Source: Oikopleura dioica | Lineage: Eukaryota; Animalia; Chordata | DNA: 64,000 nt | Reading direction: 5' to 3' | Assembly (NCBI GenBank): GCA_907165135.1 | Contig: OU015566.1 | Coordinates: forward strand, 9,176,001-9,240,000 | Shown here: positions 1,339-57,600 of the stretch, piece by piece | Numbering within the stretch: position 1 is the stretch's first letter | How the letters are laid out: every line of letters starts with the position of its first letter | Notes under the pieces: generated by a model | Seen by the model: only the letters and a program-made list of their open reading frames with translations | The model's database searches: none | Told to the model about the DNA's origin: nothing | Position numbers and translations under genes: made by a program

Positions 1339-4300
1339 TCAGTGCCACGCTGCGAGTGTTTTCGCGTAGACGATGCTCGACCAATCAACGCGCGGGAACC
1401 AGCCCAGCGCCCAATGACCACGAGGAGGATGCCCCTTTCGCAGACATTTTTCCCTTCTCAAGGAAAATGTGGTCTTGCTCGATTCTCCGAGAAATAAAGA
1501 TTCGGGCGGCTCTACCAGTGAACAAATCATGAAAATAAGCAAAAAATCAAGTGTAAGAGCAACCAAGGCCACGTCAACCAAGCCCGGGGCTCGTTACGTA
1601 ATCGGACAGGAACTGGAAAACCTCGAGTGATACTTCGTTTAGTACCTTCTATCTGTTTTAAAATCAAATACTCAGCCATGTCTTCTTGAACGATCCTTTT
1701 TCTTTCTGACAAGAACAGTAATTGATATCAATACCTAAGGTATCTACGATACTGTCTGGTAGACCGTTGAATTCGAGTGAACTCACTGAGCTCAACTCAG
1801 TTGGAGTGCAAGACTTGTTGATGCTTTCGCAATAGAACTCGAAAACCTTAATCAGCACAGCTACTGAGCTGTAGAATTTATTGGAAGGAAAGCAGATTAT
1901 TTTGAGCGTATAGCTAAGAATCTCTCTTTATGCAAACAGCATATGCCCTAAAAGACAATAAATAGCTTTTGAATGACATATACGAATTACCGGGTATCAT
2001 CAAAACCAGGGCCAAACACCATCTTATGTCCTCTTTCCGCTGCAATAATTCCTCGCGGTACTGATTGTTTTACTCGAAAATTCTAAAAATCAACTTACCT
2101 CTGGGATTATTTTCGCACCAGGGAATCCCATGATCCTCGGCATTAAAACTCTCCATCGAATATCCAGTCAGAAAGCTGAGGGAGTACTCCTTCGACAATC
2201 CATGATAAGAAATGTCCGCAAATTTTTGTTGCATCAAATTGTATTTTTGAGCGAATCGCATGTCCAATTTTTTCACTTCGCAGTGCGGAACTGTTGCTGA
2301 ATAGATAAGTAATCGGCCTTCAGAGTCGAAAGTGTCGTTTTCGCAGACATAGCGGGAGAAACGAGTGATCCAGCTACTGAAAACATAAAAGATTACATCA
2401 GGGTTCAAAATCACCTAGTTTTTAGGTGAGGTGAGGTGATGATTACAAAAAAGGTGCACCTTAAGGGTGTCAACAACGATTTGGCCAATTTTGTGACTGT
2501 AGTTTCAGTATCTTCCCGTATCGTATTCAGTTATTTTTTTGGATGATATATTACATTGAACCCTAATTTATTAGTTTAATTTGGCGAAATTTTTAAAAAC
2601 TAATCCATTAATCCCCACCGCCGCTTCAAAGGACGTTTAAATGCTTGATCTCACCAAAGTTGTACCTGTAGATTCGGTACCTTCCCGAAATTCAATTTCT
2701 TTTATTTTTCTCAGGATGAAAGGTTGAACGCTAAACTATTAGTTTAATTTGACGGATTTTTGAAAAATGAGCTGTATGCACCTATTTGCATGCATAATGT
2801 GATGCAACGATTTTTTCAAAGTTTGAGCACGATTCTAGTTCGGTTCCTGAAATTGAAATTTTCTCGTTTTCACAGGGATAGTAGTTTGACCTATCGACAA
2901 TCACCCGGGGCGCTTAGATTGGGCACTGATTAATCCCTTAATCCTCTTTTCCGGCGCTAAAGTGCAGGTGTTTGCGACTTTTGCCGCGCTGTTTGAACAT
3001 GTAAAATTAGCCCGATCTTATCGAAATAGGTATCATTGAATAGAGATTTTTTCGGGCTTTCAGAAAATATATAGGTTGCTATACTAAATAATAATTTTCA
3101 AAATAGCATATTTCACAGTGCATTTCAGTAGAACGCTACTGCATTAGAGCGCACATAGAAATGGTCATATCTCGAGTTCTCGTTGAGATATTTCAGATCT
3201 GAAAAAGTGTTAGAATCATCGTCCACCAAATAACAAAAAAGGTTTCGATGACCTTATCGGACATGGCTGGACCCGATCGTTGTTGACACCCTTAAGGTGC
3301 ACCTAAAAAAGTCCCAAATCTCAAAAATTTTAGGTGAGGTGGGTGAGGTGATAGATTAGAAAAAGGTGCACCTTTTAGGTGCACCTAAAAAGCCAATTTT
3401 TGAAAAATTTTAGGTGAGGTGGGTGAGGTGATATTCTGAAAAAGGGTGCACCTTTTAGGTGCACCTAAAAAGACGGATCTTGGAAGTTTTTTAGGTGAGG
3501 TGGGTGAAATTTAGGTGATAATTGATCAAGTGTGTGCACGGATTTTGCTCCTGACTTCGATTTCGAGTCCTTTGAAATTACTCGCAAATTTCTTCCGGGT
3601 AATCCGCAGATTTTTCTACGAGTCTCCGCGCGAGTAGATCGAGTAAATGGGTAAAGGATAATCGCGAGCTACTCGGCGGAAAGGATAACACTCGTAGCGC
3701 GGGTAGCCCGTGAAAAGGCTCTCCGCGCGAGTAACCCGTTGAAAAATCTGCGGGTTGCCCAGTAAAAAATGCCGGGTATTGACATTTGCTCAGTGTCCCT
3801 ACGCCACAAATCAGACCCTAAGCTACATTTTGGTACCCTTGGGGACTCTCTGCGACTTCTCTGGTCGGAGAACATAGACTCCCCAGTTGTCGGAAACATA
3901 AAAAAACAGTGTCAAAGGACTCGAAATCAACAGCCAAGTTTGAATTTCAAACTTTAAAACAACTCACCGAGAAAAAAGGTGCACCTAAAATCAAAACATT
4001 CCTAGGTGAGGTGAGGTGAGGTGATGATCACAAAAAAGGTGCACCTTTAGGTGCACCTAGAAAAGGCCCAAATCTCGAAAGTTTTAGGTGAGGTGGGTGA
4101 GGTGATGATTTCAAAAAAGGTGCACCTTTTAGGTGCACCTAAAAAAGCTTAAATCTGAAAAATTTTAGGTGAGGTGGGTGAGGTGACAATTTGCACCTCA
4201 CCTAAATTGAACAAGGTGCACCTTTAGGTGAGGTGATTTTGAACCCTGGATTACATGTATATCGAACAAAATTTAGAAAATCTCACCTTATGGCGCAGTA

Positions 4301-42411: not shown

Positions 42412-44146
42412 ATGTTTTTCCGTGTGTTCTTGCTTTGTTTTTGTGTTTCAGCGTTCTTGCACTGGAATCATAAGTACTGTAGGTAGTCACTCTTAATTAT
42501 CATGGGAAAGCTGAGTCACTAGAAATTGGCGTTCCGGCAGGTGTCTTCTGGGCCGAACAGAAGAGATTAAGAAGCGTTGAGTGACTCTGAATCAATTGAA
42601 ATTTCTGAAGAAGCGCAGAAGCCATTGTTGAGAATAAAATGCCAGAGTACACACCACTGCCATAATTTGTTTAAGAAAATAATCCAGAGAATCAAAACTC
42701 GAAAGGAAAACTCAAAACGAAAGCGGAAAAAAGCAAGGTAAGAGATTTTAGTGTTTACGCAACGTCAGATGCAATCGTCAGGAAACATAAGCGTTTATAA
42801 AGATTAGATTGCCTTTGTGCATGGGCAATAATCTTAAGGAGGGGGTCGACGAGAATCGGGATTTCCGTGACCAAAAATGCGGGAAAACCTGATCAGATAG
42901 GCAAAATCTGAATTTACTTGCAAAAAGAAAAGGGTTGAAAAAATTAACCGGCGAGAAGTAGAAAAAATTTTGCCCAGAAAAAATCGGTCAAAAATGCCGT
43001 CAAAGTAGGGGCATTTTCGCGAAAATGCACCAAAAATAGTCATTTTTTTTACATTTTTGTTCATTTGACCCCTTAAATCTTATTTTTATCGAATGATTTT
43101 AGGCTCAACAGATTCGTGAGGATCTGAGGATTCCAAAAATATAAGATTCAGACACAGACCATGTGTATACGCAAAATTACGATCACCTCTGAAAAAATTC
43201 TCGTCGACCCCCCCCCCTTAAGGGGCTGGGCGGGAGAATAATTCTGTGAACAGAACTATTCTGTGGAAACAGAACTATTCTGTGAAAAAACAGAACTATT
43301 CTATTTGAAACAGAACCATTCTGTTTGAAACAGAACTATTCTGTGTCGAGCTTAAGCAAAATTTACTTTGATTATGTCGTAGATAGCTTATAATACTTCG
43401 GAACTCATGTCTTAGAATGGAAAAGGATTGACTTTAGTTGGTCTTCGAATCCTGCAGCCAAAAACAATCTATAACAATTATAGTTTGTTAATAGAAGCTG
43501 AACCGAAGAGGCTATGAAGCACGCTACGGGCCTACGGCCCTTGCGCGCATTTTCTGATAGAGAACTCATTGGGTTGGCAGGGGCAGTCTTTTTCTACCGC
43601 TGGGACTCATTTTTAGCAGCAAACAACTTCTGCATTGGCAGAATAATAGTTGTTTTCGCCAAAAAAAATTTTTTTTTCACAGAATTATTCTCCCGGAAAG
43701 GGGGGGTCTTATCGTGAGAATAATTCTGTTTTTCACAGAATAGTTCTGTGCACAGAATTATTCTCCCGGTTGCCCCCCTTAAGGGGCCTCTCGGAAAGGC
43801 AAATTTTCCGGAAGGATTCAACAGATTAAAAGAGAATTTTCAAATCAACGAAATTTTTTTCATCAAAGAGAGATTGTTTAAGAAAAATCCCTTTTTTCGA
43901 CCCCTAAAATTTTTTTCCGAAAAATATTCAATGTCGTAGTGTCTCCTTAATCCCCAGGCCAAGGAAAAGCAAAAGATAAGAAAGCCCTGGGGCGAGTGAT
44001 AAGCGCTGGAAAAGCAAATAGAATTGGCCCCGAACGCGCAATATTTGTTAGTATTTGGCTTTGTGTTTTTTCGCATTTTTGCAACTTTGTTTAGTCTTTC
44101 CAAACAAAACTCGGATCATCCGTCGCCTGAAAAAGACATCAATTAG
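42412..44146 (+). CDS. Putative small secreted, basic protein
   Basis: Signal-peptide-like start MFFRVFLLCFCVSAFLHW. GT-AG-bounded exons give ..AQKPLLRIKCQSTHHCHNLFKKIIQRIKTRKENSKRKRKKA, then AG|GTAAG and a phase-matched last exon LSKQNSDHPSPEKDIN*. Internal junctions are tentative and no homology was recognised. Confidence 0.35.
42838..43217. mobile_element. TTAA-flanked Kolobok-like MITE A
   Basis: TTAA-GGAGGGGGTCGACGAGAAT ... ATTCTCGTCGACCCCCCCCCC-TTAA, with TTAA at 42834-42837 and 43218-43221. Confidence 0.75.
43222..43778. mobile_element. TTAA-flanked Kolobok-like MITE B with subterminal ~20-bp tandem repeats
   Basis: TTAA-GGGGCTGGGCGGGAGAATAATTCTGTG ... CACAGAATTATTCTCCCGGTTGCCCCCC-TTAA. 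AACAGAACTATTCTGTG-type repeats are at about 43250-43345, with inverted copies at about 43680-43760. Confidence 0.8.
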
Positions 44147-51600: not shown

Positions 51601-54600
51601 TCGTCTATCGTCGAAAAGGCGCTTTTCTAGCTCCACTCACGTCATCCTCTTTCCTGAGTCAAATTTTCATACTCCCACGAGTTCCACGAGAGTTTCCAGT
51701 AAAACAGCAAAGATGAGATAGCGTCTGTTAAAAAGTGCGCACAAAATCGCGGCAGATAAATCAAGCGCGACACGTTGAGCCAATTCTATTTGAAATTTAG
51801 AACAGTTATCAATCAACGAAAATGACAGCCCTTAATTCATAAAAGGGGCAATTATGTTACGATACAAGAAGAATGTTCTTTCAGACGTAATAATGTAACC
51901 CATGAATTTAAGCGAGGGATCTGAAAACGCTATTTTTGAGCAAAGTATTCTCCTTAATTTAAGATAGTGATACTGATACCCTTATCCGTTCATGCTCGAA
52001 TGCTTGAAAATCTGTCTCACGAAATTCATCTTCAATTAAAGAGCGCGGCTTACGATTCAGCTGAGTTGTATGATGCATCTTCAACGATATCCGCTGGATA
52101 CACAAAATTGCACTTTGGAAATCGAGTCATGTAGGTTCAATCAATTATTTTTTTTTGCATTTTGAAAACAGGATCGCTCAATCTCTAAAACGCGTAAAGA
52201 AAGAATTACGCGGATAGAAAGACGTGGCCAATTGACCATGAGGCAAGCTTAATCCCGGATTATCATTGCAGCTTATTACCAAGATGCGAGCTTCGCGATA
52301 ATTTTAATGAAATAGATTTATTCCAAATTATTTGCGGCTTTCAATAACTGTCGAATAATGAGATAAATGCTGAGGGTACATTTTTAATTGCCTATTTCTC
52401 GAAAATAGACATAAAAAATGCACTTTAATTATTCTTTTGACCGCGCAACAAATACCTTATTACTTTTCAACTCAAAAAACTTCTGGGCCAACCAAAGCCC
52501 CAACAACAAAAATTAATGAGTAAATTCCATTCCAGCGAGATGCAAAAGTCGGAACAGAGTGGATGTTCGTTAGGAGTCGCTCAATGCTGTTTCCGTTTCT
52601 GTTTTTAAATATTTAAATAATCGAATTTTGAAGATGGATACGCCGCGGATGACCTTAAGCTTTCAATGCTTGGTGGAAGGAACATGTTCAACATGCAATT
52701 TTTTCGAAGGGAGTTCCCTTAAGTTTTGAACATAAAAAAGCCAGGAAAAAGCAGTGACTGGAATTGACAATCTTCATCTTTCACAATTCGAGGTATTTTG
52801 CTTATCTAAGGAACCACCCTTATTCGACTCGGCGGCTTTAGAAAGTCCGGAAATTTATCCGTTGGTTACATAAGTTTTCCCTTCTTGAGTATTACAAGAT
52901 TATTTTGTGGCTTCTTGGTTCCACCTTGATTTTAATTGGCAAACATGAGGCGAAAAATGACCGTAACAGATTTGGCTGGTTTGAGCTCTAAAGCGTAATG
53001 CTACGCATCCGACTAAGAACCGAGCCATGTAAAAATATCATTTTCCTTTCTTATCGCCAACGTGAAATCATTAACAAGCTGCTTGCTTTTTCTAACGTAA
53101 ATGCAATTAAGAAACCCAATCCCTCGCTTTGAACTTCAAACAAACCAGGCCTCAGTTATTGCTGATTTTAGGAAATGATCTTTTTGTTATTCGCGAACGG
53201 CAAAAATGAAACACTTGTTCATCAAACTCTGCCTTTCATTTTATATGTATTTGTAAAGTATAGCTTTTCAGTAACTAACTAAGCGGGGAATAACAAGATT
53301 GTTATAGAAAGCGTCTTCCATTTTCACGAGTTTGATAGAGCAAAAGATTTCGATTTTCGCGGTTTTCGCTCTCCTCAAAGAGAGGCAAAATCGCTCGATT
53401 CTACAGAAAGAATCAATTATACGTTTCATAAAAAATGCTCAAAATCAGGAAATTCACCATAACAAGACTTGTTTCATTACAAAGGAATCAAAGAAAAAGT
53501 GATCTGAAAAATTAAGAATTATAAAAAGAAAGTTTTGCTTTTTAGAGCCACATCTTTAAAAAATCAGCGAGCGAAGTTTTTTATTTCAAAATCTGTTGAC
53601 GTTTTGGCTCCAGTATTAGTCCGATAGAATGTCTTTGCGGTCAGCAAAGATTCCCGATTACGTAATCGCTCCGGAAATCAGCGGATAAGTTGACACCGGA
53701 AAAACCTAAGGATAAGCCGGCCAACCTAGCTCCCTAAAAAGAACTCATCCCGACCTTCTTACCAAAGCTTATTTCTTAGGTTACCGACTTCCAATTTGAA
53801 TATCGACTGCAAAACTTCTCCACTGGATCGTATCCGCGTCTTTCTCTTAGTAAGCATTGGAGTATTTATTTACCACGTGAGATCCTTCTCCCCTTGACCC
53901 ATTTGTTTAGAGTTCAGACTCAAACGGAACATCGGCTATTTTCTCCTCCAAACGTACATGCCGTGCTCGTTGATAACGATTCTCAGGTGAGTCAAAAATT
54001 TTGTCAACTTGGAAGGCGATTTTGACACACGTTGAATGGCAAAGATAAGCGCTCCTTAACTTTGGTTTGAAAAATAGGAAACTTTAATTAATCCACCTGG
54101 GGGCCCTTGGTGATTTTGATAGATAACCGCATTAAATGGTTTTAATTCTTGCTGAGCTTGAAAATGTGATTTAATCTTAATTCAAGAGTCATTCAAGAAC
54201 AAATTTCTAAAAAATAATCGAACAATTGCATCACATTTCTTATCAAATAAGCTTCAAATTATCTAATAATTATGGTCATGATTTGTGATTTCTGATTTTA
54301 GCTGGATCTCTTTCTGGATCAATTACGAAGCAACAGCCGCTCGAGTTTCTCTCGGAATCACGACAGTTTTGAAAAGGAAAGGGCATCAACTCTGTAATTT
54401 TGTTGTCTGCAATTTTTCTGTAACGAAGCATTTCCGCATTCTGCTGAGCCAATTTCGCTGCGTGGGGCTGAGCAGGTGGCGATGCCTTTTTGAGGGTGGA
54501 ATGTGGTCCTATGCGTTTTTTCTTAGACACAAAGCGTTTCTGATCATAGAGTTAGACAATGACGACTATTTCGACAAACGTGAGAGCTTCGTTGCCTAAG

Positions 54601-57600
54601 ATCCCGGATATCAAGGCCTTAGGTAAGCTTTTACTTTTTTTATTACGATGATTCTTATTGATGGCCCTTGATACCTTTTTAGATGTCTACATGCTGGGAC
54701 GGGTCGGCTCGTTGAACGTATGTATGTTTTTTTGAAAGTGTTTGAAAAGAGCGAGTCACTCAATCACTCGCGATATGGACGAGCCGACGTAAGATCTGTT
54801 TCGTTTTCGTCTTTATGGCGCTGCTAGAATATGCGCTCGTTAAGGGGATCAACGTCATTATAGAACGTCGCGCCAAAACAACTGTAATGCGTCTCAAAGA
54901 GACTGTGACGCCTTCTTTTGTCAGTTTGATATTGAAAGTTCAACTTAAAAAATGAGACCTTAGTTTATCAAAAAAATTGTGAGCAAAATTTCGTAACCTC
55001 CGATGAGGGGTATCAACCCGAAATTTCGTCATCATTGATTTCGGAAAACCACAACGTGGCCTTGATAAGTCTAGCCAAGTGATAAGAAGGGGTCTCTTAT
55101 CCCTTCGCTTCTCTTTCCGCCAAATATTTACTCGGCATGAAACCTGGACCCGTGCTAATTAGAATGGCAGAGATGTCGAGATAGCCACTAATTGCCCGTA
55201 AATACCAATAACAGGCCCAGTTCTAGCGCAGATAACTATTCAATCACTTTTGCAAGGTGTCAAAAATTCACACGCGGCTGACGTTTGGCACCCGTTCGAC
55301 ACGTTTCCGATTTTACCGTAAAAAGGCATCGTTGATCCCCATTTTCGTTAACTACACCTTTTTTGGAAAGAAGGCTCGAGTGGCGAAAAAGAAATTAAAA
55401 GAGTCCCTAAGGTGAGTACCGTTTTCATTTTGATATCCAGCTGCGGGCTGAGCAAACCCTTCACTTTTACTGGAGCTTGTCTAGATTGTCTGACAGCTAG
55501 GATACATACAGTTCTTTCCGTTTACAAATTGACATGACCCAGATGAGAAAAAAGACTATTAGTGTTTGGGAAAATTCTCTCCAAAAATGTAGAATTTCTT
55601 CATCTTTTTTGCAACTCAATGAGAAAGAAATGATAGTTTCTAATTTTAGATTATTTCGTCACTCATTTTTAGACAACGAGAAATCGAAAAGGCTCAAGAA
55701 AGAGCTCAGCGGAATGCCCAAAGGATGGGCATACCTTACAGCACGACGGAATTCGAAGGTAAGACTGTATCACCTTTAGAAAGCGTAAACTGATTCGCCT
55801 GGAATAGAGGTAAATTTAATCCTACTCATTCGTCTCTCCTGTATATTTCTTGAACGGCTAAGCTCCTGTGGAGGTTATTTTCATTTAATTTCAATAGTCC
55901 AAATCAGCACTTTCCCGCTCATCCCTTTTTGATCCGTCTCGCACTGTCTCTCCACGTTTCTCCGTCTCCCAGTCGCCCAAACAACTAAATTTAAGAAAAA
56001 AAAGACAAAAAATGAGCCAGTAATTGGATACTTTGACTTCCGCTCAAGAAAAAAAAAGAACTTCAAATGAGGTTTTCCGTGAATTTTGGTCATGCATTCA
56101 GAAATGAACATTTCAAAGAAATTTTTACAGTAAATTTGGAAAATTGAATTACCGGAAATTTCAGCGAGACTTGATGGATATTTATCTAAAGATCCAAGAC
56201 GGGAAAATTTAAGGGCCCGCTGAATAAACAAAGCCCCAGCTAAATGATAAAATTTTGTTTTCACGGAAAAACATCGTGACAGGCCGGTGACGTGTTGAAC
56301 TTTTTGACTTTTGAAAGATGACTAAGAAGGTTACAGTAAATGTTCCGCAATTGCATAATTGGGCGATGACGTTTTGATTTTTAGAAAAACTCGATGGCGG
56401 CCGAAATATGCTCCTAAGTGGGGATATCAACAAACCATAAATTAAGACACTCTTAGCATCCCTAGTTTACCCTTGCTTTGTTCTGATGTTATCATCTAAA
56501 AGTCGCTTAATTCTGTATATACTACTAAATACCGCTACTAAATACCGCGCTCCTGTAATCCCTAAGTGGCAGAACGGGTAGGTTATCTTGGTCATCGGAA
56601 GAAAAGCAAACAGCTTCATTTACCTGTTGCATCAGAAATTTCATAAACTCTCAGAGCAACATGACTTCGCCGTTAATTAACTAGGCGTAAAACTCCCTTT
56701 CTTTTTCTCGCGTTACGATATTAACCGTAGTATTATCTCAAAATTCGGCCACCTATAGCCGAATTATTCGTCAATATTTTCAATAATTCTTAATGAAAAA
56801 TTCGGCCAAATTGACCGAATTATTGGGCGGATTCTACAAAGTATTTTGGTGAAAAATTCGGCCAGTGAAATTCTCCGTGGACAGTCATTTTTCTTTTTTG
56901 AGGGCTTTCGCAATCGCTATGAATGCTTGTTATCAATTCTGATAATTTGATTTTTTAGGACATTAACCGGACTTATCATTACCACAAGAATTCCGGTCGA
57001 CCTCTTTCTAATAGCAACTGGTCTGCGGCGCAGACTCTGCGCAGTAAGAGCTAGTTGCAGCTCCCGAGGACTTTTTTTTGATAAGAAAATTAAGATCGTA
57101 GTATTCGCTAAAATAAAGGTTAGGGTTAGGGGGCACCTGCAAAAATGACGGAACAAATTACCCGAGGGGGATAGGGTAACCCTAACTAACCCTAGACTAG
57201 ACCCCGGCATCTTAGGACCGAAGGGGCGGAGCCCCGAGGTAAGGAACCATTAGATTGGATACTTTTTTACTGATAAAATGGAGACTCTTAATAAACGAGT
57301 GGCTTTATAGGGGCGCTGCCTTTACTCTTGGGGGCCGAATTATTCATTCAAAATATGAGTATATGAAAATTCGGCATTTGGCCGAATTTTGAGATCATAC
57401 TACCATATTAACGCCGATCCTGCGGCTCATTAGCGATCAATTAGTCAAAGCTCCTAATTTGAAAGACTCACTTCTCAAATCCAATTGCAGATAGAGGCTA
57501 GAAAGTTCGAATTGGAGCGCTAGAAAATGATTCTAAACGGAGATGGTATAGGATTTGAAAGCCCAAATAATTAGGTGACGCGGTCTGTTACACGAAGAGG

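Follow-up and report, generated by a model that had tools for sequence, protein, structure and literature searches.

How can a coding exon be split by what looks like an inserted transposon and still give an uninterrupted protein? The question is raised by a Cys-loop receptor gene of the larvacean Oikopleura dioica, which lies in a 64-kb stretch of genomic DNA (contig OU015566.1, positions 9,176,001 to 9,240,000; hereafter the window, whose own numbering is used throughout). The exons found there encode the M1–M4 part of the receptor. Its third membrane segment, M3, is best aligned with solved GABA-A beta subunits, where the matching 29-residue stretch is continuous; in the window, the conserved sequence LEYALVNY is split between LEYAL and VNY by 508 nucleotides (nt). 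The reading that we consider probable is that these 508 nt are an old, fixed intron of a GABA-A beta-like receptor, derived from a transposon and removed exactly, without an AG at the 3' end, under the guidance of a terminal stem.

Inverted and direct repeats at the borders of the intron

The reading frame ...ATG GCG CTG CTA GAA TAT GCG CTC G stops at 54839 and continues as TT AAC TAC from 55348 (Table 1). A first-pass annotation of the window, made from the sequence alone, had described at this site a perfect 11-bp terminal inverted repeat and the 7-bp direct repeat TCGTTAA, and both were found as described. The inverted-repeat arms are 100% complementary over 11 nt, and the arm 11-mer occurs at these two sites only in the 64-kb window. 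The arms are placed differently relative to the direct repeat: the left arm is flush with TTAA, and the right arm stands 7 nt (ATTTTCG) off TTAA, with the four bases ATTT (55341–55344) separating it from the repeat TCGTTAA. Perfect 11-nt inverted repeats adjoining TTAA are found at three loci of the window, compared with a mean of 0.5 in shuffled sequences. The two ends of the intron pair at -21.5 kcal/mol, compared with -9.0 +/- 2.7 for shuffled 3' ends, and none of 1000 shuffles reached the observed value. No coding capacity was found in the 508-nt intron, and its retention leads to a stop after 37 more codons.

Table 1. Features of the M3-coding region of the receptor gene in the window.
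Feature	Position	Strand	Basis and remarks
Mini-exon DVYML (start of M3)	54682..54696	+	Translation; RNA loose ends ...GATGTGTACATGCT then join at 54793
Upstream 97-nt non-canonical intron	54697..54793 (L009 9704-9804)	+	Inverted repeat, RNA loose ends, alignment
Exon M3a, 15 residues	54794..54838	+	Translation; one synonymous change in 15 codons relative to the Bergen copy
Direct repeat TCGTTAA, left copy, with target TTAA (54840-54843)	54837..54843	+	Sequence
Intron, 508 nt, GT..TC register	54839..55346	+	Read joint 54836->55345 taken together with the Bergen sequence
Conserved 5' block of the intron	54839..54887	+	94% identity to the Bergen copy over 50 aligned positions
Left inverted-repeat arm GGGGATCAACG	54844..54854	+	Directly after TTAA; Bergen counterpart GGGGATCAGCG
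Internal motif GGGGTATCAAC, resembling the left terminal arm	55007..55017	+	Sequence comparison; adjoins one inverted interior block
Interior block, reverse-oriented in the Bergen intron	55020..55071	+	86.5% identity over 52 nt, L009 intron positions 395-446
Second interior block, reverse-oriented in the Bergen intron	55253..55319	+	73% identity over 75 nt, L009 intron positions 130-203
TTTTACCGTAAAAAG: candidate branch-point motif (A at 55315), then last intron AG (55324-55325)	55311..55325	+	Similar motif at the same place in L009 and L012
Right inverted-repeat arm CGTTGATCCCC	55330..55340	+	Bergen counterpart GCTGATCCC pairs with Bergen's own changed left arm
Pyrimidine-rich tail ATTTTC between stem and 3' cut site	55341..55346	+	Sequence; tails of L009 and L012 are 8 and 9 pyrimidines
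Direct repeat TCGTTAA, right copy	55345..55351	+	Sequence
Exon M3b, 22 residues, then canonical GTGAGT donor	55347..55411	+	Ten changed letters relative to Bergen, all synonymous, in 21 codons

Because the direct repeat is 7 nt long, eight exact excisions are equivalent. The ends of the excised sequence would be TC..TT, CG..TT, GT..TC, TT..CG, TA..GT, AA..TT, AG..TA or GG..AA. The first-pass annotation had stated that no exact excision is of the GT-AG type, and this is correct: none of the eight is GT-AG, GC-AG or AT-AC, and none ends in AG. The sole GT donor is made up of G54839 and T54840. The sole canonical pair that preserves the frame combines this GT with the AG at 55324–55325, and the product gains the residues ASLIPIF without a stop; the counterpart of ASLIPIF is SSLIPIF both in a DNA sequencing run (X3) and in a Tara metagenome contig (L011). 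Nor does the intron show U12-type signals, as the donor region GTTAAGGGG departs from /RTATCCTT and the branch site TCCTTAAC is absent from the intron. Larvaceans are without a U12 spliceosome (PMC13326754).

Exact joining of LEYAL to VNY in Bergen-type RNA

A search with the M4 exon led to a 115-residue protein, P0010, with 47 identical residues. It is encoded on contig FN653054.1 (L009) of assembly GCA_000209535.1, which we take to be the Bergen (OdB3) assembly of O. dioica. The Bergen contig carries the intron at the same site, with a length of 491 nt, a left border ...GCGCTCG TTAA GGGGATCAGCG... and a right border ...GCTGATCCC TTTTTTTT GTGAAC.... Between it and the window, the differences amount to 16% in the M4 exon and to about 30% in those introns that can be aligned, from which we conclude that the window comes from another lineage of the O. 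dioica species complex.

Three poly-A RNA runs had been aligned to the window, and the read joints were available as a table on window coordinates. The reads are 90–99% like the window, nearly all of them 90–95%, and thus represent a lineage other than that of the window. Their loose ends identify this lineage. A 30-nt loose-end consensus with intron sequence upstream of the DVYML mini-exon matches the Bergen contig at 30 of 30 positions, and the loose end after KESLR matches the same contig across the next junction, which is canonical; the reads are therefore Bergen-type. The RNA source also appears to carry the intron, since two reads of run X20 put TGTG ahead of AACTAC, which fits the unspliced T-run/GTGAAC border of the Bergen contig and not the spliced message.

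In this RNA, a joint from 54836 to 55345 skips 508 nt and connects LEYAL straight to VNY. The joint is carried by six reads of run X19 and ten reads of run X20, with about 15 distinct starts, and four letters at the joint fit both sides. No listed read joint uses the AG at 55325, which would give a joint to 55326. The message GCGCTCGTGAAC is consistent with the four ambiguous letters and leaves three registers on the Bergen contig (GT..TT, TT..TG and TA..GT), none of which ends in AG. Their equivalents in the window are GT..TC, TT..CG and TA..GT; the first is the one given in Table 1, and the registers 54840–55347 (TT..CG) and 54841–55348 (TA..GT) fit both lineages equally well. The repeat at the Bergen joint is only 2 nt (GT). 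No in-frame AG acceptor is available in the Bergen intron: 16 nt separate its last AG from the downstream cut, and use of this AG would shift the frame; in L012, a Bergen-like contig from a metagenome of the Joint Genome Institute (JGI), the distance is 17 nt. The Bergen-type lineage removes the intron precisely and without an AG, and we infer the same for the window lineage. Reading transcripts across the site had been suggested in the first-pass annotation; the 16 reads give an exact LEYAL/VNY joint for Bergen-type RNA, and the window lineage itself is not covered by them.

In the public Bergen annotation (L009:2792-12636), the receptor is broken up into two gene models of 158 and 115 residues, and the second model starts with an exon (MLVACHEPSN) that falls within the M3 intron. 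The gene predictor was probably defeated by a sequence gap together with the non-canonical introns. The N-terminus MLVACHEPSN of P0010 was considered as an alternative exon and rejected as a mis-annotation that lies within the intron.

Age of the intron and conservation of its ends

The intron is present in the window, in the Bergen contig, in three wild metagenome contigs and in contigs of the DNA run X3, which cover both borders. The Tara contig L011 contains the whole intron at 96% identity to the window and with identical arms; contig L010 shows the left border only, at 93% identity; and the Bergen-like contig L012 carries the intron as well. The LEYALVNY exon is uninterrupted in L002 and in L003–L008, contigs of metagenomic DNA that include Tara METAG scaffolds and that are also without the window's neighbouring introns. 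Homologues were sought with single exons, and the open reading frame (ORF) with exon M3b as the query gave matches only from more distant relatives. The empty site in L002 and L003–L008, of the kind that the first-pass annotation had proposed to look for, indicates that the intron was gained. We place the gain later than the divergence from the L002-like lineage and earlier than the separation of the window and Bergen lineages.

The receptor gene is under purifying selection. Between the window and Bergen, 10 letters are changed in M3b and 19 in M4, and all 29 changes are synonymous, with no amino-acid change in 68 codons. The window and L011 differ by four letters in M3b and by none in M4, and the five differences shown between the window and X3 in the last exon are all synonymous. 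Since retention stops translation and the downstream exons are under selection, living animals of the two lineages must take the intron out in frame. The proposal of the first-pass annotation is thereby refuted insofar as it saw intron gain caught in progress. Supported are those parts of it that concern the gain as such: the M3 exon is split by an element with a terminal inverted repeat and a duplicated target containing TTAA, and the site is empty in more distant relatives. The intron is common to O. dioica lineages that have diverged deeply, with 29 synonymous changes between their downstream exons, and its interior has both diverged and been inverted. It is old and apparently fixed.

The first 49 nt of the intron are 94% identical between the lineages, and the interior gives no forward alignment. 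Two interior blocks align in reverse, which implies that the middle of the intron was inverted in one lineage while the ends stayed collinear; evidently, the orientation of the interior does not matter and the ends do. At the 3' end, the lineages have a TTTTACCG.AAAA-like motif in common, as well as an AG immediately 5' of the right arm; the right arm and the pyrimidine tail, which is 6, 8 or 9 nt long, are likewise shared. The stem, formed by intron positions +6..+16 and -17..-7, has been preserved in four sequences from the two lineages. Its strength is kept as well (-21.5 vs -21.0 kcal/mol, with at most one of 1000 shuffles pairing as well), and one stem position is changed on both arms between the lineages, from A to G on the left and from T to C on the right, which turns an A-T pair into G-C. 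The fold of the whole intron is unexceptional (z = -0.76), and the terminal stem alone stands out.

The conserved 5' end of the intron belongs to a larger block of about 210 nt (54678–54887) that takes in the mini-exon, the 97-nt intron upstream of M3a, M3a and the first 49 nt of the M3 intron. This block is 92–95% identical between the lineages; the other introns of the receptor gene align at about 70%. The block may serve the two neighbouring rule-breaking introns as a code for structure or for splicing. An Rfam search of 54300–55500 with E up to 1 gave no match, so the conserved block is not a described RNA family. In a consensus fold of the block, covariation was uninformative because there are almost no variable columns.

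The upstream 97-nt intron has the ends GG-AG in the window and TG-AG or GT-AA in Bergen. It is closed by a 10-bp terminal stem (54703–54712 / 54779–54788) lying 6 and 5 nt from the cuts and contains an inner hairpin. Its removal is backed by about 14 RNA loose ends, which match the Bergen contig exactly. The DVYML/ICFV junction has the same length as in human beta-3, and a solved GABA-A beta-3 structure aligns across the DVYML stretch of the mini-exon. A canonical GT-AG version of this intron (54703–54793, adding GR) was ruled out by the RNA loose ends.

Other introns of this gene also depart from the rules or vary in position. The M2-coding region contains an AA-AG intron (54372–54555, VL/TMTT) that the relative L002 is without. 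Its 5' part holds GGGCATCAAC, a relative of the terminal-repeat core, and a degenerate inverted partner lies near 54476–54488; this intron may be an older, decayed element of the same kind. L002 (1380-1850) in turn has a GA-AG intron five codons upstream, between FVFM and ALLEY, and none of the window's M2–M3 introns, and an intron of L003 lies two codons off the window's KAL/D intron. Across the sequences compared, turnover of intron positions in this receptor gene is very fast. An RNA-derived JGI contig of a distant relative (L001:700-800) is spliced at a downstream junction and has about 800 nt of non-coding, tandem-repetitive sequence with a CCAG end directly 5' of GTGAATTAT (VNY). This sequence could represent either an alternative 5' end or an independent intron at exactly the site of the M3 intron.

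Origin, mechanism and alternatives

We propose that a non-autonomous DNA element of about 0.5 kb with terminal inverted repeats inserted at TTAA within the M3-coding exon. In the most economical register, the donor would be the GT that arises where the target's G meets the first T of TTAA, and the 3' cut would follow a short pyrimidine run (TC in the window, TT in Bergen) with no AG. The A of a TTTTAC motif, 30–32 nt from the cut, would serve as the branch point, and the AG located 10 nt past this A would be too close for use. The 11–12-bp stem, 5 nt from the donor and 5–9 nt from the 3' cut, would juxtapose both cut sites and hide the nearby region of the unused AG. Structure and distance, and not an AG, would in that case determine the 3' site. 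The upstream 97-nt intron would follow the same design.

Several points weigh against this account. A non-AG 3' site is chemically awkward for the U2-type spliceosome, and the case for a role of the stem is thin, as it comes from one covarying pair in two lineages; the stem may also be kept or shaped by selection for splicing. The right arm stands 7 nt off TTAA, unlike the prediction for a clean TTAA insertion. No second copy of the element was found in the 64-kb window or in 22.6 kb of L009, where BLAST returned the element itself or the orthologous site only, so that the case for its transposon origin is built on the two repeats, inverted and direct, and on the resemblance of motifs. All RNA comes from another lineage, and a GT(54839)-AG(55325) product could be a major or minor isoform in the window lineage, although we think this improbable. 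Finally, the junction is known from a summary on the window and not on L009, and its exact letters are deduced from the four that fit both sides.

A transposon origin nevertheless remains the best reading of the element, if an unproven one. The repeat core GGGKRTCRAC next to TTAA also occurs in two other elements of the window (2465–3291 and 42838–43221). The first-pass annotation had pointed out the likeness to the element at 2465, and the core does resemble the TTAA/GGG..TCRAC elements of the window. Both of these are clear TTAA/GG..CC/TTAA non-autonomous elements, with the inverted repeats GGGTGTCAACAACGAT and GGAGGGGGTCGACGAGAAT. The TTAA-specific cut-and-paste transposons include piggyBac and Kolobok. 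Compared with them, the M3 intron is similar in having TTAA directly at its left end, GG..CC termini and the character of a short non-autonomous element. It differs in the 7-nt distance between its right arm and TTAA, in the length of the duplication (also 7 nt) and in having neither a transposase nor a reference copy. Excision at the DNA level in the manner of piggyBac was rejected, as cuts at the TTAA or inverted-repeat borders would leave a 7-nt tail. The M3-M4 intron contains a miniature element of hAT-like type (56726–57404), which has inverted repeats of about 25 bp and a target duplication of 8 bp (ATATTAAC). This element is a polymorphic transposon with a high copy number: its site in the Tara contig L011 is cleanly empty, and its words reach an extremely high depth in X3.

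The alternative that deserves the most attention, though we consider it unlikely, is that the intron does not derive from a transposon but, for example, from staggered-break repair with filler DNA, and that the stem evolved or was kept as a splicing aid. The search for further copies that the first-pass annotation had proposed came out in its favour: a 24-nt terminus matched only the same locus in the JGI metagenomes, in addition to the negative results for the window and L009. The direct repeat of 7 nt and the offset of the right arm from TTAA point in the same direction, and the joint change of both arms in the Bergen lineage (A-T to G-C) is what selected pairing would be expected to produce. 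However, the perfect 11-bp inverted repeat starts at TTAA with a GGGG end, like other elements of the genome, and its core is similar to the repeat cores of other elements in the window.

Two further explanations concern the removal of the intron, and we regard each as improbable. According to the first, the window lineage splices canonically from GT 54839 to AG 55325, with exact removal specific to Bergen. This pair and the addition of ASLIPIF had been noted in the first-pass annotation. Both dinucleotides exist and the product is indeed in frame and free of stops, and all RNA is from a lineage other than that of the window. However, the pair is supported by no listed read, and use of the matching AG would break the frame in L009 and L012, with 16 or 17 nt left behind; the route is therefore not conserved. 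Moreover, the surroundings of the AG are A-rich, and the best branch-point candidate precedes it by about 10 nt. The window lineage also shares with Bergen, whose removal of the intron is exact, the conserved stem, 5' block and pyrimidine tail.

The second explanation, to which we give about the same small weight, is removal by a non-U2 pathway, either by an endonuclease and a ligase or by the route of the euglenid nonconventional introns, with the stem and its single-stranded flanks as the signal. The lack of an AG, a stem 5–9 nt from both cuts and a repeat at the junctions resembling a target-site duplication (TSD) would suit such a pathway, and the architecture resembles that of the euglenid introns (PMC11282704). 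However, a usable GT donor and a yUnAy-like motif 30–32 nt from the cut are conserved, and in the larvacean Fritillaria borealis all non-canonical introns need the U2-type spliceosome (PMC13326754).

Much less probable is that the exact junction is an artefact of reverse-transcriptase template switching across the stem and that cellular RNA keeps the element. Non-canonical joints with direct repeats and a bridging stem are the classic signature of this artefact, and the repeat in the window is 7 nt long; in the lineage that supplied the reads, however, only 2 nt (GT) are repeated at the joint, which argues against template switching. In addition, the 16 joint reads compare with two candidate unspliced reads, and retention would bring translation to a halt after 37 codons; M3b and M4 nevertheless show 29 synonymous changes and no amino-acid change. 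A recent insertion that disables one allele and leaves a broken gene copy is scarcely credible: the element does sit in a coding exon without canonical exact splice sites, but it occurs in all readable samples of two diverged lineages, there is no record of an empty-site ORF bearing the window's exon variant and purifying selection downstream is strong, and this pseudogene reading was rejected on the grounds of selection and of distribution across samples.

The closest published parallel to the exactly removed, stem-closed intron proposed here is found in the non-canonical introns of F. borealis derived from miniature inverted-repeat transposable elements (MITEs) (Henriet et al. 2019, via PMC13326754 and PMC11282704). 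The two share a larvacean host without a U12 spliceosome, ends that are neither GT-AG nor AT-AC, terminal inverted repeats, a TSD-like junction repeat, a lineage-specific position and precise removal from the mRNA, which is documented here by 16 junction reads and L009 and for the Bergen-type lineage only. The main classes in F. borealis have AG/AC and AG/AT ends, and a YAY triplet both precedes the donor and marks the end of the intron, whereas the registers common to both O. dioica lineages are GT..TY, TT..YG and TA..GT, with no YAY; and the introns there form a genome-wide majority, in contrast to the one O. dioica intron described here. Divergent U2AF beta paralogues and altered N6-methyladenosine (m6A) of small nuclear RNA have been described for F. 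borealis, and a duplication of U2AF that has been linked to such introns has been reported for its lineage (PMC13326754).

Introners of Micromonas, Aureococcus and dinoflagellates (Huff et al. 2016; Gozashti et al. 2022, via PMC11282704) are similar in that an inverted-repeat element with a target duplication becomes an intron within an exon and the GT is built from the duplication. Unlike the M3 intron, with its non-AG acceptor and no second copy, they form multi-copy families of near-identical GT-AG or GC-AG introns. The euglenid nonconventional introns are removed after the conventional ones by an unknown route and are released as circles (PMC11282704; PMC4770533). The M3 intron shares with them non-canonical borders, a stem near both cuts, TSD-like junction repeats and a suspected MITE origin. 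It differs in having a GT donor, a branch-like motif and a pyrimidine tail, whereas the euglenid introns have no pyrimidine tract.

The non-canonical introns of O. dioica are a comparison within the same organism, and the neighbours of the M3 intron in the same gene are of the types GG-AG and AA-AG. The non-canonical class of this species, as described by Denoeud et al. in 2010, is said to consist essentially of G-any donors with AG acceptors. Unlike this class, which keeps the AG, the M3 intron has no AG in any exact register of either lineage. About 11–12% of the introns of O. dioica are non-GT/AG (PMC8008620), and GA-AG introns are unusually frequent (PMC7072748). Our literature search, incomplete in its coverage, found no paper on stem-closed or non-AG introns in O. 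dioica.

More tentatively, stem-clamped introns might form a class of their own in O. dioica, in which RNA structure and distance, and not an AG, fix the 3' cut, with both introns flanking M3a as members, the block of about 210 nt as the structural code and perhaps even a route of removal partly independent of the usual U2AF/AG recognition. Old transposon insertions in exons could then be cut out exactly in the absence of a canonical acceptor. We regard this broader possibility as rather doubtful.

Nearly all spliceosomal introns end in AG, and in the accepted picture of O. dioica, to our knowledge, rule-breaking introns deviate at the donor only. Here, a neuronal receptor gene that looks essential has a conserved, RNA-supported intron that is under selection and lacks an AG acceptor, with transposon-like ends that pair with each other. 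For annotators, the broken public Bergen gene model at exactly this intron is a warning. If our reading is correct, the intron would tie the Fritillaria phenomenon to a laboratory model animal and would offer a concrete, mutable substrate for studying how a U2-only spliceosome chooses a 3' site without an AG. It would also show that transposon insertions in exons can survive as introns over long evolutionary time.

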